Shown here in pieces: positions 1-46,400 of a stretch of DNA of 64,000 nt. The notes under the pieces are model-generated. The model had not been told where the DNA came from and searched no databases. It saw only the letters and a list, made by a program, of their open reading frames with translations. The DNA is taken from IMG/VR virus record IMGVR_UViG_3300043446_004613, positions 1 through 64,000 of that record, one strand, 5' to 3'. Position 1 is the stretch's first letter, and every line of letters starts with the position of its first letter. The position numbers and the translations under genes are program-made.

Positions 1-462
1 ATGCACGCCATAGCTGAATACGAAGACTACCTGATCGAGGTTGATCGCCTCATCGAAGCCTGTACCTGCGACTGGTGCGGTGACGTGGCGGAGAAGCCGA
101 TCAAGAAGGAGTGGCTCTGCCGGAAGACCAAGAAGGATACGGTCAAGCATTACAAGTACTGGCGCGTATGCGCTAAATGCCTTTTTGCGGTGAACGTAAG
201 CAGGATGTACAGCAAGATGGTGTTTGATCTGACCGACATCCTCTCAGTTCAACCCATGAGCGTACCTTCCGGCCAGTTATTCTACATGGACTTTGTCCAT
301 ACGGCGCGGGAACCGATTGAGCGGGTAGTGCGACAAGCCATGCCGGGTGTAGACGCACGAGTCACGCGCATCGACGGGCAGAACGGCGAAATCCAAGTGG
401 ATGTAGAAAGCATACCGCCCAAGACGGCGGAGTACATCACTATCGACTACACTATCCCGTGA
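1..462 (+). CDS. Hypothetical Cys-rich protein carrying a gp23-like major capsid fragment and a tail-sheath-like C-terminus (may be 5'-truncated)
   Basis: CxCxxC and CxxC; DILSVQPMSVPSGQLFYMDF resembles the gp23-family motif; the C-terminal GEIQVDVESIPPKTAEYITIDYTI resembles a sheath C-terminus. Confidence 0.6.
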   Translation: MHAIAEYEDYLIEVDRLIEACTCDWCGDVAEKPIKKEWLCRKTKKDTVKHYKYWRVCAKCLFAVNVSRMYSKMVFDLTDILSVQPMSVPSGQLFYMDFVHTAREPIERVVRQAMPGVDARVTRIDGQNGEIQVDVESIPPKTAEYITIDYTIP

Positions 463-913
463 TCCCAGCCTGCTTGTAGGTCAGTTTGACCAGACCGGCG
501 TCGATGAGACGCTTACGATTGATCAGGTGCTGCGGGCGGACATCCAGCTTGTTTTCACCCATGTACTTCACGGCGAATCCATTCGTGACCAGTTCCTCAT
601 TGAGCACCTTGCCGGTCTTGGGATGGATGACCTCGCCCAGCAGGCGGCCAAACTTTTCGTTGTCATCGTTTAGCTTGTGCGTGCGCAGGACGATCCAGTT
701 GTCCGCGCTCTCGATGAAGTGTTTCACGAAATCCTTGCTGGCCAGCCCGAAGACCTTCTCAACGGCATCAGCGGTGCGACTTTCCGGCGTATCGATACCT
801 AGCAAGCGCACCTTCTGGTCGGCAAGGCGCACGTTGAATCCAAGGTCGATGTCGACTTCAATCGTATCGCCATCCACCACTTTGTTTACTTTCGCGTTGT
901 ATTCGTAAGGCAT
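452..913 (-). CDS. Thermonuclease (SNase-like nuclease)
   Basis: KVVDGDTI..D, VRLLGIDTPE and KFGRLLG motifs. Confidence 0.9.
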   Translation of the reverse strand: MPYEYNAKVNKVVDGDTIEVDIDLGFNVRLADQKVRLLGIDTPESRTADAVEKVFGLASKDFVKHFIESADNWIVLRTHKLNDDNEKFGRLLGEVIHPKTGKVLNEELVTNGFAVKYMGENKLDVRPQHLINRKRLIDAGLVKLTYKQAGITG

Positions 914-937: not shown

Positions 938-1282
938 GTGAGCGCGAATATCATCGTAAACCGGCTACTTGAAAGCGATCTCGACGCACCGTCACCGGAC
1001 GTTAGTCCAGCGGAATTGGTCGCACCGAACTATAGACCTAAGCCGCGATCCAACGTCAGCCGGTTTGCAGAACCTTACCTTGAATTGAACGGCAGACTTG
1101 GTGAAGGCAAAGGTTTGACGCTGTCGTCCTATCTGGGCACGCAGCTATCCTTCAGCACCATCGCGAGCTACGGTAAACAGTACAAACTAGCACTTCAGCG
1201 GGCGATGGATGATTACGTCAATACCGGTTTAGCCCGTCAAGGTCGCTCCAGTCGTGGCGGCGTAGCTTACTACCCTGTCTGA
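938..1282 (+). CDS. Putative head-packaged protein with LLE tag
   Basis: Starts MSANIIVNRLLE|SDLDAP; TAGTTA upstream. Confidence 0.6.
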   Translation: MSANIIVNRLLESDLDAPSPDVSPAELVAPNYRPKPRSNVSRFAEPYLELNGRLGEGKGLTLSSYLGTQLSFSTIASYGKQYKLALQRAMDDYVNTGLARQGRSSRGGVAYYPV

Positions 1283-1304
1283 GCTTCCACAGTTACGCTT
1301 CAAC

Positions 1305-1541
1305 TCATTTACGCCGACTGTAGCTGACGCGCATGCTTGTGATGTACGGACGGCTGATCTCCGGGTCAACGGTGTAGCCTTCCGCTTCAAGGCGAGCGCG
1401 AGCTTCGGCGATGGCGCTGGCCTCATCCTCGAACGGAACGTAGTCCTGCACCACCGGCCCGCAGTAGCCCATGCGGCTGCCGAACAGGGCGATCTTGCCG
1501 TCGCTGATGGCGATCTGGGCTTCTTTGATTTCAGTACTCAT
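1305..1541 (-). CDS. Hypothetical protein
   Basis: ORF track; fits minus-strand gene packing. Confidence 0.5.
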   Translation of the reverse strand: MSTEIKEAQIAISDGKIALFGSRMGYCGPVVQDYVPFEDEASAIAEARARLEAEGYTVDPEISRPYITSMRVSYSRRK

Positions 1542-1656
1542 ATAGGTAAGTGTTTACATTGTACCCACCACCCGGTCGGCTCTTGGGTTACCTGCGTGAA
1601 CCCGTCCAGCGCAGCTAAACGCTCCATCTTCTGTTTTTCGTCGTAGGGCGTAGGTA

Positions 1657-1896
1657 TCAGCTGGGACGGATTTTATCCTTGGACAGATTCATCTGAGCGG
1701 CCACAGCCTGTACGGCGGCGTTCAGTTTGTGCGGTGTGATCTTAGGGTTGCCGTCGTTAGCGACCTGACAGTAACAGAGCAAACTCATCCCGCTCAGCAT
1801 AGCGGCGATGATCTCGCTTCTATGTTCCGGCGCGATCGGCGCGGTGTTGGCGTATTTGTTTACAGCGTCCGTGATTTGTTGTTCAAGGCTATTCAT
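1657..1896 (-). CDS. Hypothetical protein
   Basis: ATG at 1896 overlaps the upstream stop (ATGA coupling). Confidence 0.5.
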   Translation of the reverse strand: MNSLEQQITDAVNKYANTAPIAPEHRSEIIAAMLSGMSLLCYCQVANDGNPKITPHKLNAAVQAVAAQMNLSKDKIRPS

Positions 1897-2321
1897 GCAA
1901 GGTAGGCGAGCGCGAGTGCGTTGCAAAGTAGGTGGAGAGTGTTGTCGGTAATGATCAGCAACCAGATGCGCATCCAGATCGGCTTGATGTCGGACTTCAG
2001 CTTAGGCTTACCTTCCCATACGGGACAGACTTCCTCGTCGTAATAGCCGGTCATGCGGCACTCGTTCCACGGATAGTAACCGTTCGGCCCGATATGGTTC
2101 TTGGCCCAGATGACGCAGCGGGCCAGCCCGAAGCGGTCGATCAGGAAATGCGTGCCGTAGATGGCGAGCAAAGCCCACACCGAGTGGGTAAGCAGGATGA
2201 ACGGTAACGTGTAACAGAGACAGTGGACAGCGCAGGCTAGCGTGCTGTTGCGCTTGTTGGCTGCCATCCAATCGGACTGAAGAATGTAATCTCCGACGAG
2301 GTGGGCGATGAGTTGGTTCAC
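1893..2321 (-). CDS. DUF3307-like membrane protein
   Basis: HLVGDYILQSDWMA..K, HCLCY, THFLID and DNTLH motifs. Confidence 0.8.
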   Translation of the reverse strand: MNQLIAHLVGDYILQSDWMAANKRNSTLACAVHCLCYTLPFILLTHSVWALLAIYGTHFLIDRFGLARCVIWAKNHIGPNGYYPWNECRMTGYYDEEVCPVWEGKPKLKSDIKPIWMRIWLLIITDNTLHLLCNALALAYLA

Positions 2322-2509
2322 GTGTTCTTAGGTTTAATCCACGGGTGGTCGGTGTATCTCCAGTTGGTCATTGTGCGCTTCAACGCGCCACAGTCTGGAC
2401 ACCAATACACAACAACTGTACCCATGCCTTCCATAGAACTGCCTACATCAACTTTGTTGGTATGCTTGCAGCTGGGTCGTTGCGTAGGCTTTTTGGTGAG
2501 ATCGCTCAT
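2318..2509 (-). CDS. Small Zn-ribbon-like protein
   Basis: CxH...WCPDCG; start chosen downstream of the promoter motif. Confidence 0.5.
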   Translation of the reverse strand: MSDLTKKPTQRPSCKHTNKVDVGSSMEGMGTVVVYWCPDCGALKRTMTNWRYTDHPWIKPKNT

Positions 2510-2527
2510 GACGTAATCAGACTGAAG

Positions 2528-2557
2528 TGTATACACTTTGGCTTCTGATCCGTCAAC
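2528..2557 (-). promoter_or_regulatory. Early sigma70-like promoter (GTTGAC...TGTATACA)
   Basis: Matches the motif recurring at about 10 operon heads. Confidence 0.6.
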
Positions 2558-2565
2558 AAATTATT

Positions 2566-3180
2566 TCAATCTGTGGGGTAGAACGTGCGGTGCAGCCGAC
2601 GCATCTCGTCGGGGCTGAGGTGATGACCGGTCACCATGTCGTTCCGGGGATGGGGCAACGGCTTGTTCTCATGCTGCAAGCGCGGCGTCCAATAGAACTT
2701 GGCCTTGTTCTTCCGGCCCACCTCGCAGGCCCAGCCATCGTCGCAATCCGGGCAAGGTGTACGCGGCGGTGTCTTTACCATGCAATCGACCAGCCGTCGG
2801 CTGAACATCAGTCCGGCTCCGCCTGTGCTCCACTGATGCTCGGACATGATGTCACCGCCGATCATCTCCATTCCCGGCTGCCAGAACAGACTATCGAACC
2901 GTGCCGGTACGGCATAGGTGTCGTCGTCAACCCGGAACATGTAGTCGAACGTGAAATTGGCTGCCGCATAGCTGACTGCTGCGTGCATTTTATGGGGAAG
3001 CGCTTCGTAGTTGTCCTCCACGTACAGCTGGACTGTATTCGGCTCGTCGACCTTAGCGCCGTGCCCGACGTAGAACAGCGGCGTCATGTCTGGCAGCAGC
3101 TTGGTCAGCCACGTCTCCCGCTGCGCGGCCCGCCGGTCGGCGTTCTTGACGCAGGAGGCGATGAGGATCAGATAACGCAT
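2566..3180 (-). CDS. Glycosyltransferase, GT31/Fringe-like
   Basis: R.AQRETW, DNYEALPHK, FRVDDDTY (DxD) and GGAG motifs. Confidence 0.8.
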   Translation of the reverse strand: MRYLILIASCVKNADRRAAQRETWLTKLLPDMTPLFYVGHGAKVDEPNTVQLYVEDNYEALPHKMHAAVSYAAANFTFDYMFRVDDDTYAVPARFDSLFWQPGMEMIGGDIMSEHQWSTGGAGLMFSRRLVDCMVKTPPRTPCPDCDDGWACEVGRKNKAKFYWTPRLQHENKPLPHPRNDMVTGHHLSPDEMRRLHRTFYPTD

Positions 3181-3287
3181 TGCAGAAAAGCCAGCAGGAT
3201 CAAGAGCATGCCGATGCCCGCGCAAAGCAGAACGATGAGGATGCTCTGGCGGCGGGAGGGCCGGTTGTAGGAGCGTTCGTATTCCAT
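3168..3287 (-). CDS. 39-aa single-TM protein (not in ORF track)
   Basis: MEYERSYNRPSRRQSILIVLLCAGIGMLLILLAFLQCVI; TAGTTA 7 nt upstream. Confidence 0.5.
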   Translation of the reverse strand: MEYERSYNRPSRRQSILIVLLCAGIGMLLILLAFLQCVI

Positions 3288-3319
3288 GTTCTATTAACTA
3301 ACAGAACAGTATTTAGCGC

Positions 3320-4048
3320 ATGATCGTCGCTGTTGGAAACATGAATCGGGGAGTCGATCCCGTCCTGCTGCACCACTTCTACAAGCATTACACGGAGTGG
3401 GGCGTGAGTCGCTTTTACTGGGGTGTATACAGCGGTCGTGACAATCCTCACTGGGACTTGCTGGCTGACTGCTCAAAAGCGTACGACGCGGTGCTGATCC
3501 CGTGGATGGACGGTGTGTTCGAGAACAACAAGGACTTGGCTTTCTTCAACCATGTCCGGCAGCAGCTTGGCCCGGATGACTGGTACGTTCCGCACGACAC
3601 GGATGAGTTTGTCGTCGTACCGGGATACCGTAACTTAAACGACGTAGTAGCGGCTTGTGCCAAGGAGAGCGCGTCATGGGTCACCTCGGAACTGGTCGAC
3701 CGGATAACGATGAACGGTACGATCCCACCGGCTTTGACTATGGAGCCTTCCATCTGGCAGCAGTTCCCGCGCATCGGTACTGTGACCAAGCGGATTCAAC
3801 AATCGTGGACAGTCAAGGTAGCGCTGGCGCGATCAGACATTGCTGTCACCTCGGGTCACCATAAGATTGTCGGGAGCGCGATCCCGTTCAAAAAGACGGC
3901 GCAAACGCATCACTTCAAATGGTATGGTAACCTCTATGAACGCGAAGCGCAGAAGCTCTTGGGTTACGTCCAACAAAAGAAGCCGTGGATCACAGAGATC
4001 GCACGGCTTTTGACGTATATGAACTTGAACGATGGTCGCGTTACTTAG
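3320..4048 (+). CDS. Glycosyltransferase family 2-like (Glyco_tranf_2_4 type)
   Basis: HY..WGV..F, WYVPHDTDEF, GHH and HHFKW motifs. Confidence 0.75.
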   Translation: MIVAVGNMNRGVDPVLLHHFYKHYTEWGVSRFYWGVYSGRDNPHWDLLADCSKAYDAVLIPWMDGVFENNKDLAFFNHVRQQLGPDDWYVPHDTDEFVVVPGYRNLNDVVAACAKESASWVTSELVDRITMNGTIPPALTMEPSIWQQFPRIGTVTKRIQQSWTVKVALARSDIAVTSGHHKIVGSAIPFKKTAQTHHFKWYGNLYEREAQKLLGYVQQKKPWITEIARLLTYMNLNDGRVT

Positions 4049-5108
4049 CTGCCGGTAGCATGGTTTTTTGGCCTAACGGCGCGTGCTTCGGCGGAATAAG
4101 GTCGAGCAGTTCCCAGTAGTAGTCAACCACCGCGATACACTCACCCATGCGCGGTTGCCAACCTTCAGGAAGCCCGCGACTGGCGGCATACGCGTTGATG
4201 CAGTGCTTCGGCACAAAATTGTCGCCTAGCAGCTTGTCGGTATTCGCTAACGGAGTGTGGAGTACGAACCCAGCCTGAACAAACGCAGACAGTCCGAATT
4301 TCTTCGCTTCAGGCTGAACGGTGATAAAGTAAGAACCCTCTGATTCAGTCAGTTTGATACCGAGTTCAAGACGATCCAAGTGGCGTAAACGGATAAGACC
4401 GGTGGGCGGTGCAACTTTGTACGGACGACCCATCCAAGCAGTATATTCGTTTAATGCTTGAATGAGCTTGTGCTGCCGATTAGCAGCCAGTTTTGACCAT
4501 GCAAAGCAGAGGAAGGTCAAAGACCACATGGTAGCGTCATTCGCGGCGAAGTAAGTTTTCTTACGGGCGTTACGATTTCCAAGTATCGTGAACAACGTAG
4601 TCAGGTACTTGATGCGACCTTGTTCGCCAGATTGCATCCACTTACAAGACGCCGCACGTACTTCAGGCGTCGTTGCCGTTCTCTTGGGTGCTCTCGGCTT
4701 TAACGTTTCGAACGGCGCATCCGGCGCACTCTCTGACGCAACGACAGGCTCAGGTGCGGCAGGTGCGGCAGGTGCGGCAGGCGCGGAGCTTTCCGCGAGC
4801 GTATCAAACTGAGGAACAGGTGGCCGCTCGTTCAGTGCTAAAACACGCGCACACCCCGGCATAGGCACAGTCGGCGTGTTTATGTTTACCAGTTCTTGTG
4901 CGGCTGATGATGCAGCCCGATCGAAGTCGGCAAGGATACTCTGCAAGCGGTCGATCTTGCCTTCGAGCTTGCCGATGTCCTGATCGTACACCTTGATCTT
5001 TTCTTCAGCAGCCTGCTTTAGACTCTGGATGCCGAGAATGTTTTGTTTCGCCAGTTCAATTTCGGTTTGAACGGCCTTTTGTTGTTTGTCTAATGATAGG
5101 TTCATCAT
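4041..5108 (-). CDS. Hypothetical protein with N-terminal coiled coil and PAA linker
   Basis: 355-aa ORF; heptad-rich N-terminus; (PAA)n repeat. Confidence 0.65.
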   Translation of the reverse strand: MMNLSLDKQQKAVQTEIELAKQNILGIQSLKQAAEEKIKVYDQDIGKLEGKIDRLQSILADFDRAASSAAQELVNINTPTVPMPGCARVLALNERPPVPQFDTLAESSAPAAPAAPAAPEPVVASESAPDAPFETLKPRAPKRTATTPEVRAASCKWMQSGEQGRIKYLTTLFTILGNRNARKKTYFAANDATMWSLTFLCFAWSKLAANRQHKLIQALNEYTAWMGRPYKVAPPTGLIRLRHLDRLELGIKLTESEGSYFITVQPEAKKFGLSAFVQAGFVLHTPLANTDKLLGDNFVPKHCINAYAASRGLPEGWQPRMGECIAVVDYYWELLDLIPPKHAPLGQKTMLPAAK

Positions 5109-5317
5109 AATTCGTTAATGTTTAGAACGGCAATTCGATCGGATTTGCTCAAGCCCTTCAGGTACGTTTTACGCCAGCGTACGTCGAGGCTGTTATACTC
5201 TTCCCGCAGCCGCTTGATCCGGGTGCTGTCCCAGTCAGGATCGGTGCGCTCATAGCCACCACCAACGCCGCCACGGTTACTGCCGCGTGCGCGGCTGCTG
5301 CTATTTATTTTAGGCAT
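5105..5317 (-). CDS. Hypothetical protein
   Basis: Overlapping operon packing. Confidence 0.5.
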   Translation of the reverse strand: MPKINSSSRARGSNRGGVGGGYERTDPDWDSTRIKRLREEYNSLDVRWRKTYLKGLSKSDRIAVLNINEL

Positions 5318-5570
5318 ACCAGCTTATGTTGGTTCCGTGGTTTTTGTCGCGGAGTTCGATGGACTTTTTCATGTCGCTGCGGATGGCCCGCAGGGCCTGC
5401 TCAGCAGACATGCAACGGGCGTACCACTCCTTGTTTTCATCACGTAGCGCGTTCAGCTTTTTGGCCATAGCTTTGTTCTGCTGGAGCAGGTCGGCACGCG
5501 TGGCCGCTAGCTGTGGATGCAGCCGGAGCACGAGCCAGTGAACAAAGCGTTGAAGGTTACTCTCTTTCAT
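5310..5570 (-). CDS. Hypothetical coiled-coil protein
   Basis: Operon packing. Confidence 0.55.
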   Translation of the reverse strand: MKESNLQRFVHWLVLRLHPQLAATRADLLQQNKAMAKKLNALRDENKEWYARCMSAEQALRAIRSDMKKSIELRDKNHGTNISWYA

Positions 5571-6202
5571 CAGTTATCCTCCGGTTCGTCACCTGATATT
5601 TTCTTGATCTCTTCAGCGTGCTTTTCATAGACAGCGGCTGCGGCTTCGTGAAGCGTAGGTATATCAGCGCCTTCCGCCATTAACTTTTTGACGATAGTGG
5701 CAAGCTCGGCACGTGCTGCGGCAGGCAAGCGCACGCCAAGCACGCGGCCCGACCCGAACACACCGTCGGTTCTGTCAGTCAGTTTGTCCGGCCAGTTTGC
5801 GATGTATTTGGCTGATTCGATACCGTGCAACTTCAGCTGTTCAGCATTGTCTACAAGCACCTTGTTCCAGCGCTCAGTCGTAGGTTTGTCGAAGAGGTAG
5901 CTCATACCCAACGGAACGGCGTTCATCACGTCAAGCAGGTGAACTTCAAAAACCATCCAGCCACGATGGCGGGTTACGACAGCCGGAATTTTATCGACGC
6001 CGAACACGATGAGGTGTCCTTCCGCTGAGGTGACCGCCGTATCGCCAGCGCCAGTGAGCGCGTACCCGATCAGATCGTCAAACTCCGGCGTGTCACGTTC
6101 ACATTGGTTGTTGCACTCTTCACAGTTGTCTTTGCACTCATCGTGCGGTGACGTTTTATCCATTCTTGCCATACGTATTCCTAGAGCCAAAGGCGAACAC
6201 AC
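5570..6202 (-). CDS. Hypothetical protein
   Basis: 210-aa ORF; true start may be slightly downstream. Confidence 0.6.
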   Translation of the reverse strand: MCSPLALGIRMARMDKTSPHDECKDNCEECNNQCERDTPEFDDLIGYALTGAGDTAVTSAEGHLIVFGVDKIPAVVTRHRGWMVFEVHLLDVMNAVPLGMSYLFDKPTTERWNKVLVDNAEQLKLHGIESAKYIANWPDKLTDRTDGVFGSGRVLGVRLPAAARAELATIVKKLMAEGADIPTLHEAAAAVYEKHAEEIKKISGDEPEDN

Positions 6203-6363
6203 TCGCCGATGGTGGGGTGTTTGTGGACTTCGGTGTGTTCCACGGTTGTCTCAAAAATCTCAAACTTCTTCTCAGGAAGAACAGAGTGGGTGCAGGTGAC
6301 TTCGATGTCACCATGCTCCTTCTTGATGCGGCGCAGTTCGCGCATGAGGGCACTGATTTTCAT
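6181..6363 (-). CDS. Hypothetical protein
   Basis: MKISALMRELRRIKKEHGDIEV is a typical small phage protein N-terminus. Confidence 0.55.
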   Translation of the reverse strand: MKISALMRELRRIKKEHGDIEVTCTHSVLPEKKFEIFETTVEHTEVHKHPTIGECVRLWL

Positions 6364-6376
6364 TTTTATGCGTAGC

Positions 6377-6892: not shown

Positions 6893-6941
6893 TTCGTGCC
6901 TTCCTTATTATCGCGGGCAGTTCGTTGCCATAATTAAACGC

Positions 6942-7989: not shown

Positions 7990-7992
7990 CTG

Positions 7993-8816: not shown

Positions 8817-8819
8817 AGA

Positions 8820-9951: not shown

Positions 9952-10353
9952 CTAAATGATCGGCGTGCTCGTGATCGTAAAATCAAGTTCCGGCCCCGCC
10001 ATGCGCTCCCAGATCACAACACCTTCAGTCCTGTCGACTTCGGTTATGGATACTCCCGGACTGACGTACACTGAATCGTGAATAATTGCAGCGTTCGATT
10101 GCCGCAACGCGGCTGAGAGCAAATTGTCAGCTTGAATTGCGTACATCCGCTGGAGGGCTTGGTCTGCTTCATAACTCCAAGTAGCCTTCAGCTTGCGCGG
10201 GGCAGGTTTAGGTGGAACGTACGTATCAAGCAAATCAGCCACGTATCCGGCGGACGGGTCATCCGACAAGCCGACAGCGTGCTCAGTCCACGTCTTACTC
10301 AAGCGGGCGTGCAGACGGCGCTGGCATGTAACGTGTTTCTTATGGCTATTCAC
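9952..10353 (-). CDS. Paralog A: shared N-domain plus gp23-like capsid fragment
   Basis: GLSDDPSAGYVADLLDTYVPP followed by RKLKATWSYEADQALQRMYAIQADNLLS. Confidence 0.6.
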   Translation of the reverse strand: MNSHKKHVTCQRRLHARLSKTWTEHAVGLSDDPSAGYVADLLDTYVPPKPAPRKLKATWSYEADQALQRMYAIQADNLLSAALRQSNAAIIHDSVYVSPGVSITEVDRTEGVVIWERMAGPELDFTITSTPII

Positions 10354-10573
10354 GGCGGCGGTTCTTAATTACGACAAACGTCTTGCATGCAGACTCATTT
10401 GGCAGAAAGCTGATCACTGCGTCAGGTGGGAAGCCGTCCATCAGTGAAAATGTGACCGGCGGCCTGAGATCATCCAGCAAGTCTAAAACGTAGCACTCAT
10501 CCGGGTTTTCCCGGACGCTGTCGTCCAAGTTGCGCCACTTGCGCTTAACGTCAGTACTGCGTTTCAGGTTCAT
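10346..10573 (-). CDS. Paralog B: shared N-domain
   Basis: SVRENPDECYVLDLLDDLRPP. Confidence 0.55.
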   Translation of the reverse strand: MNLKRSTDVKRKWRNLDDSVRENPDECYVLDLLDDLRPPVTFSLMDGFPPDAVISFLPNESACKTFVVIKNRRRE

Positions 10574-10883
10574 CAAGATCAACTTCTAGTATTGAGCGGT
10601 AACGGGCTGCGTGTTCCCGCAGTGCTTGCTCAGCTGTATCCAGTCCCGCATTAAAAACCTGCTGTCCCAGTTGCGTGCTGCTCATGCCGTACAGAAGGCC
10701 GAAATTCAGAATCTTGTTCAGCTGATGATACGCATCTTTCGGCGGCTTCAGCGTATCAAGCAGTTCGGCGACGTACGTTTCGTCCGGGTCGTCCTTGATG
10801 CCATAGCCAAAGCGCGTCCAGTGCTGGCGCATCCGAGCGCGGAACATAGTGCGCTTATCGCGTCTTTGTCTACGAGTTGACAT
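10551..10883 (-). CDS. Paralog C: shared N-domain plus PolA motif-B-like fragment
   Basis: GIKDDPDETYVAELLDTLKPP followed by KILNFGLLYGMSSTQL. Confidence 0.6.
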   Translation of the reverse strand: MSTRRQRRDKRTMFRARMRQHWTRFGYGIKDDPDETYVAELLDTLKPPKDAYHQLNKILNFGLLYGMSSTQLGQQVFNAGLDTAEQALREHAARYRSILEVDLDEPETQY

Positions 10884-12277: not shown

Positions 12278-13243
12278 TCATAGCGATTTGAGCAGTGTTA
12301 CATAGCGGTCAACAAACGTTTCAAGTCGACGTTCCTGCACCAATGTACGGTGCGCGTAAAGGCGGTCAATGCCGGTCGAAAGCGCAAGTGCTTTGTCGAT
12401 TACTTCCGGCAGGTCAGACCAGTCAGGCTTGCAGTAGAATACCGTTTTATCAGGTATGAAAGCTTCCGAACTGACTTCGGAAAAAGACGTATCAGGTTTG
12501 ATCAGGATACACATTGAGAGCAGAGCCTCAAAATCCCGGTAACACGTTTCGCCAAAACCCCACGGTGACACGCAGATTTTAGCCTGAATCATGCGTTTAG
12601 CGTACGCGTTCCAACTTGCCGGAGGTTTTCCTGACTTACCCAAGCAGGCATCCACGCGAAGGTTTTTGATTTCAGCCAGTTTCTGCATCAACAGGCTTCG
12701 ATGCGCAGTAAGCGACGACGTGCCTGCGAAGAAAATGTCAACGGGACGTTGTTTAACGCTAGGGCCACGCTTCGCCAGTTCGCTTTGACCGTACTGCTCG
12801 CTGCGACTGACCTGCTGAAGCATGCCGAAATGTACAAGTGATCGTATCTTGTGATACAGCGAGAGGACGGTTTTTTGGTAGCTGCCAAAATCCGGCTTAG
12901 TCAGAAGATCAGCGTGGCGCTCACGTACCCACTGATTTTCTGCCATACCTTTGTAGCCTTCAGGAGTAAACTTGGAGTATTTGTCGTACGATAAGACGTT
13001 AGACTGGCTCAATACATCAGTAACGACTAAAGCGCCGCTGTCGCACAGATGCGCCACGACGGTCGGTCGCGTATACGTAGCGGAGGGCCGCTTACAAATA
13101 ACGATGTCAAGGTCAGCCGCAGTTTCCGGCGCGGGATTGATGTTCAGCTGAATTCCACGAGCATCGAATAAACACAGACTGCGCTCAAAAAGGCTCAAAT
13201 ACAAGCTCAGCTGAATGTCTCTAGCGTATACGTTTATGCGCAT
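12278..13243 (-). CDS. GT-B glycosyltransferase
   Basis: DIFFAGT..R..L and SPWGFGETCYRDFEA...C.LIKP motifs. Confidence 0.75.
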   Translation of the reverse strand: MRINVYARDIQLSLYLSLFERSLCLFDARGIQLNINPAPETAADLDIVICKRPSATYTRPTVVAHLCDSGALVVTDVLSQSNVLSYDKYSKFTPEGYKGMAENQWVRERHADLLTKPDFGSYQKTVLSLYHKIRSLVHFGMLQQVSRSEQYGQSELAKRGPSVKQRPVDIFFAGTSSLTAHRSLLMQKLAEIKNLRVDACLGKSGKPPASWNAYAKRMIQAKICVSPWGFGETCYRDFEALLSMCILIKPDTSFSEVSSEAFIPDKTVFYCKPDWSDLPEVIDKALALSTGIDRLYAHRTLVQERRLETFVDRYVTLLKSL

Positions 13244-13830
13244 TTTTGGTAAACAGTGTAAAGACAAGCTACACGTGGCACTAGGCACATCGATTTAGTC
13301 TCACTAGGCAACGGCTCAGTCCAGTTCTGACGGAGGATCAGATAGCCTTTCGGCACAAGATGCGTGGCCATGTCCTCGATAAAGTATATCCAGTCATCGG
13401 CTGTCCAGCCCTTACTGTAGACAATACGGATGGATGTAATCGCAGCGTAAGTCCCGTTCAGTTCCAGCGGTGTTTGGGCCTTAACGGCGGCGATCTGTGT
13501 ATCAGCTATGCCGCAAGTTTCGCGGATAATCTGGAATCGTGGATCAGGCACATCAACCCCGGTAACCGTGCAACCTTTTAGCTCGCGCAACAGCCATAGC
13601 GTATAACCGGGGCCGCAGCCGATGTCACATACACGGCTGCCGTCACGGATGAACTTGGCAAGGATTTGGTGATCTTTTAGGTATTCGTCGTAAATCGATG
13701 TCCTCCAAGCCGTAGGGTCTACCCACTTGTCTACAACGTAGTCTTGCTGCACATAGGCAGCCCGCGCTTTGGCAACAATAGACAGGAAGGCACAGCGTAT
13801 GTCGTGCGTCATGACTCTAACTAGCGACAC
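13234..13830 (-). CDS. Class I SAM-dependent methyltransferase
   Basis: VCDIGCGPG, VTGVD and L.PKGYL motifs. Confidence 0.85.
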   Translation of the reverse strand: MSLVRVMTHDIRCAFLSIVAKARAAYVQQDYVVDKWVDPTAWRTSIYDEYLKDHQILAKFIRDGSRVCDIGCGPGYTLWLLRELKGCTVTGVDVPDPRFQIIRETCGIADTQIAAVKAQTPLELNGTYAAITSIRIVYSKGWTADDWIYFIEDMATHLVPKGYLILRQNWTEPLPSETKSMCLVPRVACLYTVYQKCA

Positions 13831-20355: not shown

Positions 20356-21003
20356 ATGAACATTCCGGTCACATACGTACCCGATCCACTCAAAGTGGAC
20401 GGCGGAGGAACGGTAGTGCCTCAAGCGCTGCCGAGCGCAGACATGCCTATCACCGTAATACCTGCGCCGGTCTTGCCTCCCGTGCCGCTTCCGCAGTTCT
20501 CGTGTACGTTGGTACCTGATCCGAACAAAGTCGATGGCGGTGGTATCGTCGAACCGCAGCCCGAACCTGTCTCCAACATTCCGGTGACCTATGTCCCTCC
20601 GCGTTCGACCACACTGCCGACAGTTTACTTCACAGCCGCGCCGACAAGCGGTGAAGCTCCGTTGAGTGTCGTGTTCACAAACGAAAGTACGCTAGGCGTC
20701 TATTTCACGTGGGATTTTGGTGATGGCACAACCAGTAACAGCGTATCGCCGACACACATCTATACCGGAACAGGTACGTACACGGTTGAATTAGCCGGTA
20801 TCGATGCAAGCGGTACGACGTACTACACCCGCGAGAACTACATCGCAGCAGTGAACAGCGCACCGCCAGCCCCGGTTGCTGACTTTACTGCTACGCCGTT
20901 AACCGGCGATGCTCCTTTGAGTGTTACGTTTACCAACCTGAGTACGAACGGAACGTACTTCACATGGGATTTCGGCGACGGCACCATCGTCAATAATCCT
21001 TGA
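20356..21003 (+). CDS. Pro-rich protein with 1.5 PKD domains
   Basis: PDP.KVDGGG twice; F.A.P..G.APL.V.FTN.S...WDFGDG twice; TAGTTA at 20341. Confidence 0.8.
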   Translation: MNIPVTYVPDPLKVDGGGTVVPQALPSADMPITVIPAPVLPPVPLPQFSCTLVPDPNKVDGGGIVEPQPEPVSNIPVTYVPPRSTTLPTVYFTAAPTSGEAPLSVVFTNESTLGVYFTWDFGDGTTSNSVSPTHIYTGTGTYTVELAGIDASGTTYYTRENYIAAVNSAPPAPVADFTATPLTGDAPLSVTFTNLSTNGTYFTWDFGDGTIVNNP

Positions 21004-21015: not shown

Positions 21016-22758
21016 ATGAATCCGACTCACCTCTATATCAGCGCTGGAACGTACACGGTCGTACTCACAGCTACCGGCCCTAGCGGAACCAGTACAAAAA
21101 CACGCACGAATTACGTTGTGGTCGCTGAACCGCCAGTGATCTACTGGAAAGGTATAAATTCGGACTGGAACGATCCGAATAACTGGTATCTAGATTCAGC
21201 TGGTACAGTTCCGTCGCCGTATGCCCCTTGGCTTGCTTCTGACGCTCACTATCTAGCTTCAGACTTGGCGCTGTGTGATTCAGCCATTGAAACGCCCGGA
21301 ATCACGAGCGTTTTAAGTGCTAATGTTACCGGTACGTGCAACCTGCACGTTGAGCTTAGTGGTGGTTCTGTATACAGCGGTAAATGGCAGAGCAACGATT
21401 TTTACGCTTACAGCGGATCAATTTACGGAGGTATGTACGAGTCGCTGTTGTTCGTCGATGGCGCTACGATTTATTCAGGTACGTTCAACTCGGAAGTTAA
21501 TTTAAGCAGCGGTGAAATATACGGCGGCACCTTCAACGGAATCGTATACACATCCGGTGAAATCTACGGTGGTACGTTTAACGATTACGTAGAAAACTCA
21601 AATAACATTTGGGGTGGAACATTCAACTCTGATTTCGTAAACGGCAGCGGCAGCTTCGTGTATGACGGCAATTTCAACGGTGCCGTCACCAATAACGCAG
21701 GTGCCGGATTCTACGGTGGATTTGTTACATCGTCCTCGTTTACAAACTACGGTACCGTATCTGGGCCTGATGTAGATTATCTGAGCATCACTGTAACAGC
21801 GTTGATGAACTATGGCTTCATTTGGGGAGGCTACTGGGCGATGACCAGTATATCGACGGAAAGCGGTGAAGTACATGGTGGCACTTTCTTGACGGCGGAT
21901 GCTAGTTTTACCGTATACAATACCGACTTCAGTTCGCAGGATTATCCGCTCGTATCAGACGGAGGTACTATCTACATCGATCTAGCAACATGCCTCAATG
22001 CCTACGATCCGACATTTCCGTTTAGCGGCATAAATGGAGGTCAAGTCGTATTAGTCGAACCGCCTAACGGGTTGCTCAATTCGCTGGAAGCTTACTGGAC
22101 ATTCAGCGCACCACCCGTAAACGGAGTCTATTATTACGATGTTACCGGTAACCACACGCTCGATGTAGCCGCTAATCAGCCATCAGATGCAACAGGTATT
22201 GTCGATACCGCGCTTGTTTTTGGACAAAACAGCCCTGATTACTTGGTCGGCGACGCTATCTTTGTCGGTATGGACTACGGGCACGACGCAGTGACAATCA
22301 ACTATTGGGCACAGTACCAGTCGACGATTATCGATAGCTCGTCGGCAGCTTATCAGCTATTAAACGTTGACCAGAACTCAGGTATTGCTACTTATCAAGC
22401 GTACTGCGACCCATCCGGTGATTTTGGATACTTCAAAAATGACGAAATCGGAACCGTTAACCTCAACGGCGATGTCTATGATCGCTGGATAATGTTTACA
22501 GCCGTTCGCTTATACATTGACAATAATGGCGGATACTGGCTGTTCTACGTTGATGGTGCTTTGGTGCTTGAAGGCTACGATAACGGCATATACAGTTACA
22601 CATCTACGCACTACTTAGGAAACGATTCATCTGAAGGTTATGGTTGGATTGGTTCTGTCTGCGGCTTAGGGATATGGTCAACAGCACTGAGCGTAACGCA
22701 GATAAATCAGCTGTACAACAACGGCAATGGTTTGTCGTACTCGCATTTTACTACTTGA
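21016..22758 (+). CDS. Virion adhesin/tail-fibre-like protein: half-PKD, beta-helix (IYGGTFN repeats) and LamG/ConA domain
   Basis: NPTHLY..AGTYTV.LT; GGTFN repeats; AYW.F...W.M.T.V...YVDG...IWS.ALS..QI.QLYNNGNG. Confidence 0.8.
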   Translation: MNPTHLYISAGTYTVVLTATGPSGTSTKTRTNYVVVAEPPVIYWKGINSDWNDPNNWYLDSAGTVPSPYAPWLASDAHYLASDLALCDSAIETPGITSVLSANVTGTCNLHVELSGGSVYSGKWQSNDFYAYSGSIYGGMYESLLFVDGATIYSGTFNSEVNLSSGEIYGGTFNGIVYTSGEIYGGTFNDYVENSNNIWGGTFNSDFVNGSGSFVYDGNFNGAVTNNAGAGFYGGFVTSSSFTNYGTVSGPDVDYLSITVTALMNYGFIWGGYWAMTSISTESGEVHGGTFLTADASFTVYNTDFSSQDYPLVSDGGTIYIDLATCLNAYDPTFPFSGINGGQVVLVEPPNGLLNSLEAYWTFSAPPVNGVYYYDVTGNHTLDVAANQPSDATGIVDTALVFGQNSPDYLVGDAIFVGMDYGHDAVTINYWAQYQSTIIDSSSAAYQLLNVDQNSGIATYQAYCDPSGDFGYFKNDEIGTVNLNGDVYDRWIMFTAVRLYIDNNGGYWLFYVDGALVLEGYDNGIYSYTSTHYLGNDSSEGYGWIGSVCGLGIWSTALSVTQINQLYNNGNGLSYSHFTT

Positions 22759-41316: not shown

Positions 41317-42618
41317 CTATTGTTGATTAGACGGCACTTCGCAGCGGTGTGACCCGGTTTCTATGTCATCGTGTGAAATTAGCTTACCACAATTTTCGCA
41401 CGGATACGTAGGTGTTGAGTCGAGATGTCTGTACTCCAGCTTATGTCCGTTAGGGCACTCGTAGCAGTCGAGATCGTCAGGGTCACCGGCTTCAATACCG
41501 TCGAAACCTGCGCGTAGATAGCTGAAATCATTCAGCAAGCTACCTGTTTCGCCGCAAGCAGGGCAGCGAACAATAGGAAAACTGACACCACCGTCTACGT
41601 CTGGCTCAACAAATTCCAGTCTATGCGGAACTTCAAGCGTCCTTACGTCAATATTTTCAATATCACGCTCGCTAGGATCGTCAATATCTTCCAACAAGCC
41701 TGAACGGTAGACAGCTTCTTTCAATTTTGTATACGTCGCCGCATCAAAAGCGTCGCCAACATCAAGGGTAAGCGCTGCTACCGGCATTTTTGAGCGAAGA
41801 TGATCCAAAATATCCAGAGGGACGCCGCGCAATCGTAGAGCATCCCAGTCAATGTCTGCTCCGGCTTCGAGCACGTGTCGGTTTTCCTTCAGTGCCGGTA
41901 GAATAAGGCTTTCATAGCGCCACATTGCGTCTGAAACGCGCAAAAGGCACTCTAAAACCGGGGTAAGCTGCCGTCGATTGTGCGCTCTTTCCAGAGCCGA
42001 GCTAGTGCTCTCAAAAATTTTAGCCGTGATGCTTGCTGCTTTAGGTAGATTTTCGGCTAGGCGTTTGGCAAAGGCAGGTGCCGCAGCGCCGGTTAACCGG
42101 ATATGGTGACCGTAAACTGCATCTGGAGCTTGAAGAACGTTGCTTGTGGGGTAACCAAGTGCTTCGGCTTCCTCAATCAACTCTTCAACGATGCCGCCGA
42201 CGTCGTGTACACGGCTCGCTGCTGCCGCGATGGCGAGGCGGTCGGTACCGTTCAAGCTGCCCAGTGCGTTTACAGGCGTCCATTCGACCTTAGTGACGTC
42301 ACCACCACCCGGTTTGGCCTTGGTGTTAGGTTCAACGATGGCGTAGTAGAGCGTGACCGGCAGTTTCCGCGCCGCATGGCTGGCCAAAAAGAGCGGTTGA
42401 GGGTCGACATCCATGCCTGTCTCTTCTCTGACTTCACGCTTGCAGGATTCGACACCTGATTCGGCACCGTTGGCATGACCTCCCGGTATGCTCCAACGTC
42501 CGATTTCATCGGCAACCAGTGCAACTTCCAGTCTGTCGTTTGTTTTGCGCAGGACAACGCATAGGTACGATTGATCGTCCGTATCGGTCATCTTCTGGAT
42601 CAAAGCTTCTGCGCTCAT
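41317..42618 (-). CDS. Nudix hydrolase plus degenerate dTMP-kinase-like domain plus Zn-finger cassette
   Basis: GGH....ES....KREVREETG Nudix box; LL..SD.......ILPALK...VL; LLE|DIDDP; CPAC, CPNGH and CENC. Confidence 0.75.
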   Translation of the reverse strand: MSAEALIQKMTDTDDQSYLCVVLRKTNDRLEVALVADEIGRWSIPGGHANGAESGVESCKREVREETGMDVDPQPLFLASHAARKLPVTLYYAIVEPNTKAKPGGGDVTKVEWTPVNALGSLNGTDRLAIAAAASRVHDVGGIVEELIEEAEALGYPTSNVLQAPDAVYGHHIRLTGAAAPAFAKRLAENLPKAASITAKIFESTSSALERAHNRRQLTPVLECLLRVSDAMWRYESLILPALKENRHVLEAGADIDWDALRLRGVPLDILDHLRSKMPVAALTLDVGDAFDAATYTKLKEAVYRSGLLEDIDDPSERDIENIDVRTLEVPHRLEFVEPDVDGGVSFPIVRCPACGETGSLLNDFSYLRAGFDGIEAGDPDDLDCYECPNGHKLEYRHLDSTPTYPCENCGKLISHDDIETGSHRCEVPSNQQ

Positions 42619-43751
42619 ATCATGTAAAGGTCTATGGTGGTAGAACCGGTTACCGTGAATGTGTAAGGGTTCGAGGTGATCGTTACACCGTTGATGATCC
42701 AGTGATCAAACTGCCACGACAACGCCCCTACGATCTGTGCCGTCAATACCGCAGTAAATGCGTTTGAAAACGCTGTTGCATAGAGGCCGCCGTTTCGCAA
42801 AATCTCTAAATCCCACACACTACCGCCATGAGTATCGGTTAGATTGCAGTAGTCAGCTATTACGTTAGCGGTTTGGCTGTCCGTCGATGGGGTATAATGA
42901 TCAAATGTCCCTAGTGTATAGTATGGACTAGAAGCGCTGTACAGGTACAAGGCTGTTCCATATTTTCCGATTCCGTCTACGTTTGAAACGTTACGTATAC
43001 GAGCATTGATGCAGGAGGCAAGAATGACGTTATACGAACCCAGTTCAGCGAGCATCGAAGCGTAGGTCAGGCTGTGACCGGGAAGGGTATTAGGCCCTTG
43101 ACGGTCAGAATCAGTCACCAGTACGAACACGACGGCGGCTCCGACTCTGAACGTGTATGGGCCGTGCCCTGTAGCAGTATCACCTGCACCAGTCAGTGCA
43201 GCGTCCATCGCTTGGTAACCATCTTCAATGTTACCGAGAGTATTAAGGTTAAGCGCAGCTGCTTGTAGCTGAACAGCTGTTCCCCAATCACCGGTTCCAA
43301 CGACAAGTTTGTAGGCACGATCAGAATTAGTGGTGCTGGCATATCCCATGAGCGCGTACTTGTTTTGCGTTACTGTTCCAATTCCAGCCGCTAAAAGAGC
43401 AGCTTCCAGCTGACTCGGCATTGTTGTAAGCCAACTGTGCTCAGTTGACATAGAGCCAGACTCGTCGACTAGAAACACAATATCGACGTAATTGTCACCA
43501 GCCGGTTTTGGCTCACCGATAGCTGTCAGCGTGACGGATGTACCGGCAGGGTATTCACCCAACCCGGTTACGACCGCAGAATCTGTCGGATGAATTGTTG
43601 CGGTCAAAACGTACGTGGGATTGTACGCTGTGATGTAGTTCGTTTTAACAACCGTATCCGTGTTGTAGCGCCCAACGCCTGTTAGCGACACGGTGAATAT
43701 ACCAGCGGCGCTGTACGTGTGGATCGGATTTCTGTCGTGACTGGTTGACAT
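42615..43751 (-). CDS. Half-PKD plus vWA domain inserted in an InlB-B-repeat-like domain
   Basis: NPIHTYSAAG.FTVSL; DIVFLVDESGSM MIDAS; EDG; VLVTD. Confidence 0.8.
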   Translation of the reverse strand: MSTSHDRNPIHTYSAAGIFTVSLTGVGRYNTDTVVKTNYITAYNPTYVLTATIHPTDSAVVTGLGEYPAGTSVTLTAIGEPKPAGDNYVDIVFLVDESGSMSTEHSWLTTMPSQLEAALLAAGIGTVTQNKYALMGYASTTNSDRAYKLVVGTGDWGTAVQLQAAALNLNTLGNIEDGYQAMDAALTGAGDTATGHGPYTFRVGAAVVFVLVTDSDRQGPNTLPGHSLTYASMLAELGSYNVILASCINARIRNVSNVDGIGKYGTALYLYSASSPYYTLGTFDHYTPSTDSQTANVIADYCNLTDTHGGSVWDLEILRNGGLYATAFSNAFTAVLTAQIVGALSWQFDHWIINGVTITSNPYTFTVTGSTTIDLYMI

Positions 43752-43754: not shown

Positions 43755-46400
43755 TTAATCGCCAAAGTCCCAAGTCCACGAAGCGCCGCCTCCGTTGGTT
43801 GAGAGGTTTGTGAAATTGACTACCAAAGGTAGTGTGCCTGCGGTCGGCGCGGCCACAAAATCAACGTCAAGGTACGGGATCGGCACTGCGTCAGACGGCA
43901 GCGTGAAACCCAAGCACTCAGGCATCCAGAACTCCGCCTGAGCAACGTAAAGTCCGTACTGAACCATCCAAGGCTGGCAGGTAACGACAATCGGTACGGA
44001 CTGGGCCGTATCGTACGCTGCCAGTACGGTGTCGGTGGCGTCATCGTAGTACAGTCCACGAGGCATCAGTACGGGTTTGCCGACATGGCCTGCTTGACTG
44101 AGCTTGAACGCTCCGACCTGCGCTACTGAACCGCCAGAGTAGTCTGTACCGGCAGACACGACGCCGTAGAACTTCTGTCCGTCAGTGTACGTCGTACCGT
44201 TGTACGTTACCGGCCCGACTGTCACTTCGTACTGATGTCCAGCGGTAATGCCGTCAGTAGGAATAGACGGCATTGAGCGTAAACGCGGATTGTAGATTTC
44301 GCAGAAGGCCATCCAGTTTTCGGTGCTCTCGTTTGACCAGACCGAACCGGTACCGCTAAATGTGGGTACGTCCGTACCGTAGGCTTTGACCGCCATCGTG
44401 TAGCCTTGCTGGATAGCCCGCTCAGCCCGATCAAGACATTCCTGACGCCAACCCTGAAAGCCTGCACTTAGCGGGGTAGTGTCGTACTCGTACATGCGCT
44501 GAACCTGAATCTGCTCGATGCGTACGGGCAAGGAAGGCTCATCGGTATAGTTCAGCACAAGGCTCTGTGCGCCGCTGCTCGAGGAAGCGACGGAGAACTG
44601 CCAACGGAATACGGAGGGCGTACGGTTTTCACCGAGAGCGTCCATCACGGCGTGGCTGCCTGCAAATGTACCGCTGATTGCGTAACGTCCGTACTGGGCC
44701 TTGCTCTCAAACACCAGCTTGCGGATATGCAACTGGCCTGTACCGCCTGTCCACTGGATAGGGTATTGGAACTGGCCGTTGTCGCGTACATCCATGACGG
44801 CAATCGGGCTGGTTACAACATCACCGTTCTGACCGCTAAAGGGAAGCGGCGCTACGTTCTGAACAACCGGTACAGCTTCAGAACCGGTTGCGATGTAATC
44901 CGCTTTGACGCGGAAGCCTGTTGTTTCGCCCGAGATATTGGTGTACTCCATCCACGTGTAGTACGGGCCTGCCGGAAGCGAAACGAGAAAGTTTATGGCA
45001 CTTTGGCGCACACTGCTATCCGTTGCACCGTACTGCGAGTACGTCGTGACAGCAGAAGTACCGGCAAACACCTCTCCGGGCAGATACAGTGATCCGCTGT
45101 AGTAAATGCCGTCACCGCCATCGACCATGTACAACTTGTCAGCAATACTGCCGCTTGGCACGTTGATCTCAAAGGTAGCGCCGCCGAGTGTACCGGTCGT
45201 ACTGGAGATGTTGGCGATACCTGCAAGCTCTACCCGGCCATTCGGCTGGGCGAGCACGCTCAACCGGTACGCGCCCGGCGTTACCGACCCGTCCAGCGTG
45301 ATGTCCATGACGGCTGGTACGGTGAAGCTGGCGCAGTCGTACTGCATCACTCCGCCGTAGACAGCGTCATTATTGGTGTAATTCAGGTACATCTCAGTGT
45401 CCTGCAAACCGACGCCCTTCGGCGCAAGCTGCCCAGCTTTGCCGCGCCAGTACTGCGCGTCTTTACGGTCAGGAATTTGCGTGAGAGTTTCAACGGTTTG
45501 ACCTACCTCGATACCCGGAATCGCTAGAGCATAGATTTGCGGAACATGTACTTCGTCCACACGTTCGCGCTGCCACTGGAGCGTCTTTTCGGCGATGTTG
45601 TAGATGATCTGATTTGCGCCGGGGAGCGCTGGTTCGGTCTGAAATACCCGGTGTGTACCGTCATCGTTGATGAGCGCGTAAATGTCCGGCTCACGCTGTA
45701 CCGTCCCGTACGATTCAATCTGGGTGTACAGACGGAGAGCGTGCTCAAATGGATTCTTCAGCACCTGACATAACTGGGCCACGTAACCGGCCAGCTGGTT
45801 ATCGCGGTCAGCGAGATTGCGGTCAGGTGTCTTGAAAAGATCGCGATTAAGAGGCAACGCCGGATTTATGTCGGCGCGGGCAGGCGTGCCTTCGCCCAAT
45901 GACCAGATGCTGGTGGATGGGATGATGGTGCCGGTTGCGTCTGAAAGCGGAATAGACGGATCGGCAAATGTAGCGTTGCAGGCCCGCGCCAGCACTTCGT
46001 ACACGATAGCGTCACGGCCATAAAGGTCAGCATCAGCGTAGCGGGCAGCGTCGTACGGGACGCTGACATTCGTGACGTGCCGCAGCTGAGTATTGAGTTG
46101 ACCAGCTTGATCCTCTGAAAAAGGCAGATTTGTTTCCGCCGGGCCTTGTAAAGTCGGCTTCAGTACGGAGTAGTTCCAAACGTCGCCTACTTGAACGGAT
46201 ACCTCAACGACAGCAGCGCCGACCATTAGGTCGCGGTAAGCCAGCTGACGGTCGCGCTGCTGGTACACCTTGGCGTCAAACGGCAGGTCAGGATTGACCG
46301 GCGCGAGGGTGCCGCTCAACGGTGCGACGTGCGTACCGGATTCCCATTTGATGGTGTTCCGTAACGCGAGTACTAAAGCGCTCTCTAGCTGATCAGACAT
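43755..46400 (-). CDS. Large virion structural protein ending in half-PKD
   Basis: 881 aa, beta-rich; C-terminal DF.AAPTAGTLPLVVNFTNLST...WTWDFGD*. Confidence 0.7.
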   Translation of the reverse strand: MSDQLESALVLALRNTIKWESGTHVAPLSGTLAPVNPDLPFDAKVYQQRDRQLAYRDLMVGAAVVEVSVQVGDVWNYSVLKPTLQGPAETNLPFSEDQAGQLNTQLRHVTNVSVPYDAARYADADLYGRDAIVYEVLARACNATFADPSIPLSDATGTIIPSTSIWSLGEGTPARADINPALPLNRDLFKTPDRNLADRDNQLAGYVAQLCQVLKNPFEHALRLYTQIESYGTVQREPDIYALINDDGTHRVFQTEPALPGANQIIYNIAEKTLQWQRERVDEVHVPQIYALAIPGIEVGQTVETLTQIPDRKDAQYWRGKAGQLAPKGVGLQDTEMYLNYTNNDAVYGGVMQYDCASFTVPAVMDITLDGSVTPGAYRLSVLAQPNGRVELAGIANISSTTGTLGGATFEINVPSGSIADKLYMVDGGDGIYYSGSLYLPGEVFAGTSAVTTYSQYGATDSSVRQSAINFLVSLPAGPYYTWMEYTNISGETTGFRVKADYIATGSEAVPVVQNVAPLPFSGQNGDVVTSPIAVMDVRDNGQFQYPIQWTGGTGQLHIRKLVFESKAQYGRYAISGTFAGSHAVMDALGENRTPSVFRWQFSVASSSSGAQSLVLNYTDEPSLPVRIEQIQVQRMYEYDTTPLSAGFQGWRQECLDRAERAIQQGYTMAVKAYGTDVPTFSGTGSVWSNESTENWMAFCEIYNPRLRSMPSIPTDGITAGHQYEVTVGPVTYNGTTYTDGQKFYGVVSAGTDYSGGSVAQVGAFKLSQAGHVGKPVLMPRGLYYDDATDTVLAAYDTAQSVPIVVTCQPWMVQYGLYVAQAEFWMPECLGFTLPSDAVPIPYLDVDFVAAPTAGTLPLVVNFTNLSTNGGGASWTWDFGD

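Follow-up and report, generated by a model that had tools for sequence, protein, structure and literature searches.

Why would a phage carry a small, free-standing gene whose product resembles pieces of its own capsid and tail proteins? The question is raised by the first open reading frame of a 64,000-nt stretch of DNA (the window), which covers the first 64 kb of the 211,113-bp IMG/VR virus record IMGVR_UViG_3300043446_004613. Based on the sequence alone, the original prediction described this ORF (1..462, + strand) as a chimera in which a Cys-rich N-terminal part is followed by a capsid segment resembling the Gol peptide of T4 gp23 and by a C-terminus resembling that of a contractile tail sheath. 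It was further proposed to be a second, independent example of structural-protein epitopes grafted into a small protein, possibly acting as a decoy against Lit-like or other sensors of capsid or sheath. We therefore asked whether the gene is complete, whether the resemblances exceed chance, and what such a protein might do.

The gene is complete and belongs to an uncultured freshwater jumbo phage

The source record is classed as linear and 93% complete. A near-identical 110-kb JGI contig (L003) joins the end of the record to its start through about 9.05 kb that the record lacks, indicating that the genome is about 220 kb and circular or circularly permuted. The only sequencing runs found to hold the sequence were DNA runs of a freshwater metagenome; no RNA run did. 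The phage encodes a T4-type major capsid protein of 487 aa at 129,216-130,679 (Pfam Gp23, 107 bits), preceded by a coiled-coil scaffold-like gene, as well as a 765-aa tail sheath at 150,671-152,968, a PolA polymerase, and a GroES-like co-chaperonin. No cultured phage is close, with the sheath being only 22-29% identical to that of any isolate.

ORF 1..462 (+) encodes 153 aa (ATG at 1-3, TGA at 460-462). Both segments singled out by the original prediction are present in the translation, with AVNVSRMYSKM...FYMDF at aa 63-98 and GEIQVDVESIPPKTAEYITIDYTI at aa 129-152. Cysteines lie at positions 21, 23, 26, 40, 57 and 60. Because the ORF begins at the first base of the record, it could have been a truncated or spurious reading frame. 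However, the same 153-aa gene is internal in L003 and in a second contig, L004, where an in-frame TGA lies 30 nt upstream with no start codon in between. The four nucleotide differences from L003 consist of three synonymous changes and one V63M substitution. The sequence upstream, which had been named beforehand as a test of whether the ORF is part of a degraded capsid/sheath locus, contains a divergent 299-aa pectate-lyase/beta-helix gene, and intact capsid and sheath genes lie at 129 and 151 kb. The gene is thus free-standing and is not a decayed capsid/sheath locus. No sigma-70-like promoter was found upstream. At its 3' end the reading frame is overlapped by 11 nt by a convergent gene (452..913, - strand) encoding a 153-aa staphylococcal-nuclease-like protein (Pfam SNase, E 6e-13; PHROG 452, E 3e-36). 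In other phages the next gene is on the same strand and overlaps the family gene, so the nuclease gene is not part of the family unit and is probably an insertion.

The central segment is homologous to the major capsid protein

Single-sequence evidence for the capsid likeness was modest but consistent. The protein matched Pfam Gp23 (PF07068) with 19.5 bits (E 7e-4) in one stretch, aa 77-107 against positions 21-49 of the 376-position profile, which is below the gathering score of 24.4. PHROG 138 (major head protein) was matched at E 0.002, and in a tblastn search of 50,697 phage genomes 19 of the 20 listed hits lay in gp23-type capsid genes, the best at E 8e-4. Pairwise alignments showed 45% identity over 40 aa with the capsid protein of Microcystis phage Mel-JY01 (E 1e-9), 30% over 82 aa with that of RM378, 30% over 70 aa with that of a Karamvirus, and 33% over 46 aa with the phage's own capsid protein (E 1e-4). 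A single-sequence search of the PDB also returned PH domains of protein kinase D (E 1.2e-3), but this match was not reproduced by the family profile and was rejected as chance.

The question was settled at the level of the family. An exhaustive phmmer search of 1.84 billion representatives identified 36 proteins at E<=1e-3. Two of these are tandem-repeat junk, and the other 34 are small proteins of 110-240 aa that align over aa 9-110 at about 30-45% identity. The family consensus reads D..DP...L..LI...TCEWCG ... W.CR..K..GY.SKHWK.WR.C..C ... F.KWIFP.I.NM.....L..L..VQPM..P....FYMD.V, the last part of which nearly spells FDKWIFPIIANMSENDVIDQLVALQPMAGPVSQIVYMDIV of the phage's own capsid protein. 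Eleven of the 34 members hit Pfam Gp23 on their own, the best at E 1.3e-7. Comparison of the family with four diverse capsid proteins using hhalign gave 97.8% probability (E 9e-13) over 49 columns, matching residues 89-137 of the phage's own capsid protein, and the family HMM found that protein at 54.6 bits (E 8e-16) among all 1582 ORFs of the genome. In the window protein, the capsid-like segment spans aa 59-104 (175..312, +) and is homologous to residues 96-138 of the phage's own capsid protein and to about residues 108-140 of T4 gp23, with the core motif VQPMSVPSGQLFYMDF at aa 83-98 (nt 247-294). Because the RM378 alignment spans aa 17-98, we considered that the zinc-ribbon part might also derive from the capsid propeptide, but hhalign aligned only family columns 71-119, and we do not claim this.

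Against the PDB, the four best hits of the family profile were T4 gp23 sequences aligned at residues 108-140 (AFDICGVQPMNSPTGQVFALR...), although the E-value of 0.25 is not significant by itself. The aligned stretch shares VQPM..P.GQ.F, the most conserved stretch of gp23-type capsid proteins, and is the region of gp23 in which the original prediction places Gol. In T4, residues up to L106 are disordered and inward-facing in the prohead, are thought to contact the scaffold, and later become the N-arm, with the ordered shell fold starting at L106 (PMC9546572). The 29-residue Gol peptide lies in the first quarter of gp23, is described as the most conserved part of the protein, and on its own binds domains II and III of EF-Tu to license the Lit protease of e14 (PMC3014915). 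Relative to gp23-type capsid proteins, including paralogues such as T4 gp24, the window protein has clear local homology to the N-arm and first P-domain strand, but only about 45 of roughly 490 residues are shared and the models show no A or P domain and no HK97 fold. It cannot be a shell subunit.

The C-terminal module probably resembles the end of the tail sheath

The evidence for the sheath-like module (aa 119-152; 355..456, +), which resembles residues 716-761 of the phage's own 765-residue sheath, is weaker. BLASTP against the phage's own proteome of 1582 ORFs placed the capsid protein first and the sheath second among non-self hits, with the sheath match being 48% identical over 25 aa (aa 128-152 against sheath residues 730-754) at an E-value of only 0.15. 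An HMM was built from the last 110 residues of 114 sheath homologues. The window protein scored 7.4 bits, which was reached by 3 of 5000 shuffles, while a fuller family member, P0021, scored 21.3 bits over 57 collinear residues against a shuffle maximum of 12.2. In that alignment, VRGRRAEGIMIDDANWR...QLVVDASFIPPETAENIKIDFTVKEDGA matches ERGLEEYELVVDDRNNT...EVIVDLELIPTDVAERIYINATVRESGA. A curated alignment of the module from 11 members gave P 4.8e-5 by hhalign against the sheath C-terminus (68%, 37 columns, both at the very C-terminus), or P 1.2e-3 without P0021. In the reverse direction, an HMM of the module built without the window protein found window aa 119-152 at 19.3 bits (E 8e-5), with the sheath as the next best hit. 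On the other hand, a genome-wide scan with PF17482 (Phage_sheath_1C) found only the real sheath at 152.7 kb, and Pfam scans of the tails of other members gave no sheath-family match. We conclude that the likeness is probable but not proven. In the solved sheath of Vibrio phage XM1, the C-terminus pairs with the N-terminus of a neighbour, and the resulting 'handshake' sheet docks on the C-terminal domain of the ring below (PMC10457771).

Both segments are predicted to be carried by a small zinc-ribbon protein

An AF2 model computed with the family alignment was confident for aa 5-72. It contains an N-terminal helix at aa 5-21 (13..63, +; pLDDT 67-95; family motif D..DP...L..LI), a hairpin at aa 36-42 and 48-55 (pLDDT 85-97), and helices at aa 58-72 and 77-82. 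The hairpin belongs to a predicted four-Cys zinc ribbon at aa 21-60 (61..180, +), with two CxxC knuckles on the hairpin. Within this ribbon, C23 and C26 are invariant in both of our family alignments (A1 and A2), C57 and C60 are invariant in A2 and at least 90% conserved in A1, and H50 and W54 are likewise conserved in at least 90% of members. The VQPM...FYMD motif and the C-terminus were left at pLDDT 50-63, with the core motif unstructured at about 60. Confidence was lowest in the variable linker at aa 105-118 (313..354, +), where pLDDT fell below 50 at aa 108-113 and the sequence is not alignable across the family. The picture was the same for P0021, except that its C-terminal module formed two beta-hairpins (pLDDT 62-82) that do not pack against the capsid-like motif. 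A fold search against 48,161 PDB chains gave nothing above Z 3.5, with the best matches being weak treble-clef, ZAD, RING or FYVE domains, and the ESM Atlas gave nothing usable. The grafts thus look like displayed, partner-dependent segments on a small zinc-ribbon carrier. One co-fold of the protein with E. coli EF-Tu, using the family alignment, returned no answer (score 0.00) and is evidence neither for nor against binding.

The family is syntenic, fast-evolving and accompanied by other grafts

Family genes lie in a syntenic block of small same-strand genes, and the window gene lies far from the head and tail modules. A gene of 74-75 aa located just upstream in five phages is 59-72% identical among them, whereas the family itself is only 30-45% identical. 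In the window phage, a pectate-lyase gene has been inserted upstream and, probably, the nuclease gene downstream. The predicted Zn ligands and QPM are the most conserved columns, but the tails following the capsid-like motif are hypervariable: some members stop early, about a third carry the sheath-like module of 35-55 residues, and others carry pieces of the downstream gene. For example, member P0032 ends with the C-terminus of the downstream gene seen in two other sequences, L017 and L025. The tails of members P0025, P0027, P0033 and P0011 contain NPCGE..L.P and N.NGR.Y motifs resembling the ribonucleotide-reductase active-site loop and the T4 gp21 motif, but this was not confirmed by Pfam or tblastn, and the window phage has neither motif. 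The family appears to be restricted to metagenomes. Searches of family members against isolate genomes by tblastn found capsid genes but no family member among 50,697 sequenced phages, and a search for related loci returned only two viral loci. There was no match above threshold in Pfam, PHROGs, NCBIfam or PADLOC, the only PADLOC row being PbeC at E 0.016.

Other small ORFs of the same phage carry further grafts. ORF 9952..10353 (-) matches residues 271-345 of the phage's own capsid protein, the strand plus spine helix, at a pairwise E of 3e-8. Its N-terminal 61 aa are paralogous to ORF 10551..10883 (-), the C-terminal part of which matches PolA models around the O-helix (Pfam E 1.7e-4; NCBIfam E 5e-4 at positions 718-759 of 889) but does not match the phage's own PolA. 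In a second phage contig, a 278-aa ORF with a CCHC knuckle and a spine-helix-like segment lies 2.3 kb from the family gene and scores 27.1 bits against Pfam Gp23, which is above the cut-off. The phenomenon is therefore recurrent in this clade. Mosaic small ORFs also occur elsewhere in the genome, but the weak capsid likeness of ORF 169843..170520 is probably chance, because this ORF is a Cpn10/GroES-type co-chaperonin.

Discussion

The observation behind the original prediction is confirmed: the protein does combine a Cys-rich N-terminal part, a segment homologous to the conserved region of gp23-type capsid proteins, and, less certainly, a C-terminus resembling the end of a contractile sheath. 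'Chimera' is an accurate description of this architecture, although 'grafted epitopes' understates the finding, since the architecture is conserved in a syntenic, fast-evolving gene family and is not a one-off accident. The interpretation that accompanied it is only partly supported. The remark about a second, independent example fits ORF 9952..10353, and the decoy idea is plausible, but nothing in our data shows decoy activity, EF-Tu binding or any link to Lit, and a plain decoy against Lit is unlikely as stated because the Gol peptide is itself the activator (PMC3014915). What the analysis establishes is a complete gene for a member of an undescribed family, found in a clade of uncultured jumbo myophages of about 220 kb with T4-type capsids, together with its homology to the capsid protein. 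The sheath likeness is moderately supported, while anything said of metal binding, of an interaction with EF-Tu or another partner, of an effect on Lit, or of the role of the protein in infection is inference from sequence and models.

Our preferred, though tentative, reading is competitive molecular mimicry. The family keeps the same residues that are conserved in capsid proteins, even though they lie outside any HK97 fold and are not folded in the models, and the constraint is most simply a shared binding partner. In this view the likeliest partner would be a host factor or immune sensor that engages newly made, unassembled capsid protein, either of the EF-Tu/Lit type, which reads the Gol peptide, or of the CapRel or Avs type, which read the P-domain. 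The small protein would then compete with or pre-empt that interaction in counter-defence or host take-over. CapRelSJ46 contacts the beta-sheet and spine helix of the P-domain of its trigger capsid protein (PMC9712102), and several STAND families sense capsid proteins (bioRxiv 10.64898/2026.01.04.697583). The accessory-like location, the fast evolution and the multiple grafts support this reading. However, for Lit and CapRel, binding of the capsid segment is what activates the system, so that a simple mimic would trigger rather than block them. No sensor of tail sheath is known, and the sheath-like module, whose likeness is only moderately significant, is absent from many members. Small accessory proteins that interfere with recognition of a conserved structural protein do exist, such as DSAD1, which acts against the tail-tube sensor DSR2 (PMC11087589), but DSAD1 is not known to be a copy of the sensed protein, whereas here the putatively sensed segments themselves are carried.

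The main rival, which we consider somewhat less likely, is an assembly cap or chaperone that binds the phage's own structural proteins. Both grafts correspond to the arms through which capsid and sheath subunits link to their neighbours, which fits an assembly role equally well. They could dock by beta-augmentation onto the sites that normally receive a neighbour's arm, thereby holding subunits back from premature polymerization or terminating or regulating their lattices. Proteins such as the sheath initiator gp25/TssE and tail terminators engage the sheath handshake by strand mimicry, but we found no sequence or fold match to them. The grafts also resemble the clade's own proteins more than generic models (54.6 bits for the family HMM against the phage's own capsid protein versus 19.5 bits for the window protein against Pfam). 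Arguing against this model, the gene lies in a block of small variable genes that is not the tail module, the sheath-like module is missing or replaced in many orthologues although the sheath C-terminus itself is 60-86% conserved across the clade, and the PolA-like graft in another small ORF does not fit an assembly role. It is less likely still that the fragments were captured once by illegitimate recombination and now serve merely as structural strands of a protein with an unrelated function, for example a zinc-ribbon nucleic-acid binder. The fusion of tails with neighbouring genes and the mosaic small ORFs are compatible with such exaptation, but after divergence to 30-45% identity QPM remains as conserved as the predicted Zn ligands, and AF2 does not pack the motif into a fold. 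More doubtful again is a prohead-targeted internal protein, in which the capsid-like segment would bind the scaffolding core in the manner of the capsid protein's N-terminus, so that the zinc-ribbon protein is packaged and perhaps ejected into the host. T4 loads internal proteins using short N-terminal targeting sequences (PMC9958956), and jumbo phages package many proteins, but here the graft is internal, extends into a P-domain strand that belongs to the shell fold and not to the scaffold-facing arm, and the model does not explain the sheath-like module. Chance resemblance or an annotation artefact is excluded for the capsid-like part and overall very improbable, given the internal copies of the gene, the 34 representatives and the profile-level statistics.

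A more speculative and, on present evidence, unlikely possibility is that this clade runs a 'display' strategy in which several small carrier proteins each present a piece of a conserved core protein: the first P-domain strand of the capsid protein plus the sheath C-terminus by ORF 1..462, the P-domain strand and spine helix by ORF 9952..10353, and a PolA O-helix-like piece by ORF 10551..10883. Alone or assembled into a split pseudo-P-domain, these would occupy host sensors of nascent structural and replication proteins without triggering them, which would be a multi-epitope counter-defence of a kind not yet described.

Structural-protein mimicry or partial paralogy in phage accessory proteins is already known in kind. 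What is new is an undescribed family that keeps a free-standing copy of this capsid stretch outside any capsid fold and with the same conserved residues. The Gol region is the textbook case of a capsid peptide read by a bacterial suicide system, and capsid proteins are now known to trigger many defences, including Lit, CapRel and several Avs families. Conservation of the stretch in this setting most simply implies that it has a trans-acting partner, and the old suggestion that gp23-type capsid proteins generally engage a host factor such as EF-Tu therefore becomes directly testable with a small soluble protein. If the family turns out to be a counter-defence, it would be a first example of a phage copying its own sensed epitopes, and if it is an assembly cap, it would be a new kind of regulator that uses the linking arms of both capsid and sheath.

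Capsid- and polymerase-like segments in other small ORFs

A 133-aa ORF at window positions 9952..10353 (-) was found to resemble the phage's own capsid protein, with its aa 54-133 aligning to capsid residues 271-345, which comprise the strand plus spine helix (KLK..WS.EADQ.LQ.MY.I.A). The pairwise comparison gave an E-value of 3e-8, while the match to the Pfam Gp23 profile was weaker (profile positions 148-180, E 0.014), and a word-index search found no wider family for this ORF. The first 61 aa are shared (E 1e-9) with a 110-aa ORF at 10551..10883 (-). This second ORF ends in a segment resembling the O-helix/motif B region of PolA (LNKILNFGLLYGMSSTQLG), with scores of E 1.7e-4 against Pfam and E 5e-4 against the NCBIfam Pol I models. 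Although these models were matched, no significant match was detected between this ORF and the phage's own PolA. A capsid-like segment was also identified in a second jumbo-phage contig, IMGVR_UViG_3300032053_000117 (L018), where a 278-aa ORF at positions 1213-2049 lies 2.3 kb from that phage's member of the small zinc-ribbon protein family. This ORF has a CCHC zinc knuckle and a segment resembling the capsid spine helix, and its Pfam Gp23 score of 27.1 bits is above the cut-off.

Comparison of the phage's proteins with one another pointed to further possible mosaic ORFs. A 215-aa ORF at 20356..21003 (+) looks like a mosaic of terminal segments from three large, presumably tail-fibre, proteins, as it matches the C-terminus of the protein encoded at 43755..46400 (-) twice at 61-63 % identity, as well as the N-termini of those encoded at 21016..22758 (+) and 42615..43751 (-). 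In the same own-proteome search, a 198-aa ORF at 13234..13830 (-) was found to share 42 % identity over 40 aa with a 574-aa protein encoded at 166333..168057 (-) of the full virus record (E 0.002), and this may be another short graft. A phmmer search of the PDB with the family protein itself matched aa 34-85 (window positions 100..255) to the PH domains of protein kinase D2 and D3 (E 1.2e-3 and 0.02), but because the family profile does not reproduce this result, the match is probably due to chance.

Variable tails and genomic setting of the family gene

The tails of some orthologues (family members P0025, P0027, P0033, P0011, and P0032) carry other shared motifs (NPCGE..L.P and N.NGR.Y) or, as a fusion in P0032, the C-terminus of the downstream gene. 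The motifs may resemble the ribonucleotide-reductase active-site loop and the T4 gp21 motif, although this resemblance was not confirmed and remains tentative. In the phage studied here, the family gene is flanked by a staphylococcal-nuclease-like gene at window positions 452..913 (-) and by a pectate-lyase/beta-helix gene at positions 9051-9950 (-) of a near-identical contig (L003). This arrangement was observed in this phage only. In relatives the family gene is flanked by same-strand small genes, so both genes look like insertions. The virus record lacks about 9.05 kb that joins its last base to its first in L003 (positions 951-10000 of that contig), indicating that the genome is about 220 kb and circular or permuted. 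The missing piece holds about 20 small ORFs in addition to the pectate-lyase-like gene.

A GroES-type co-chaperonin

The phage also encodes a 225-aa Cpn10/GroES-type co-chaperonin at positions 169843-170520 of the virus record (Pfam E 9.5e-11). A weak likeness of this protein to residues 416-449 of the capsid protein was detected, but it is probably due to chance. The presence of the co-chaperonin suggests that the capsid protein of this phage is folded by host GroEL, as T4 gp23 is with gp31.
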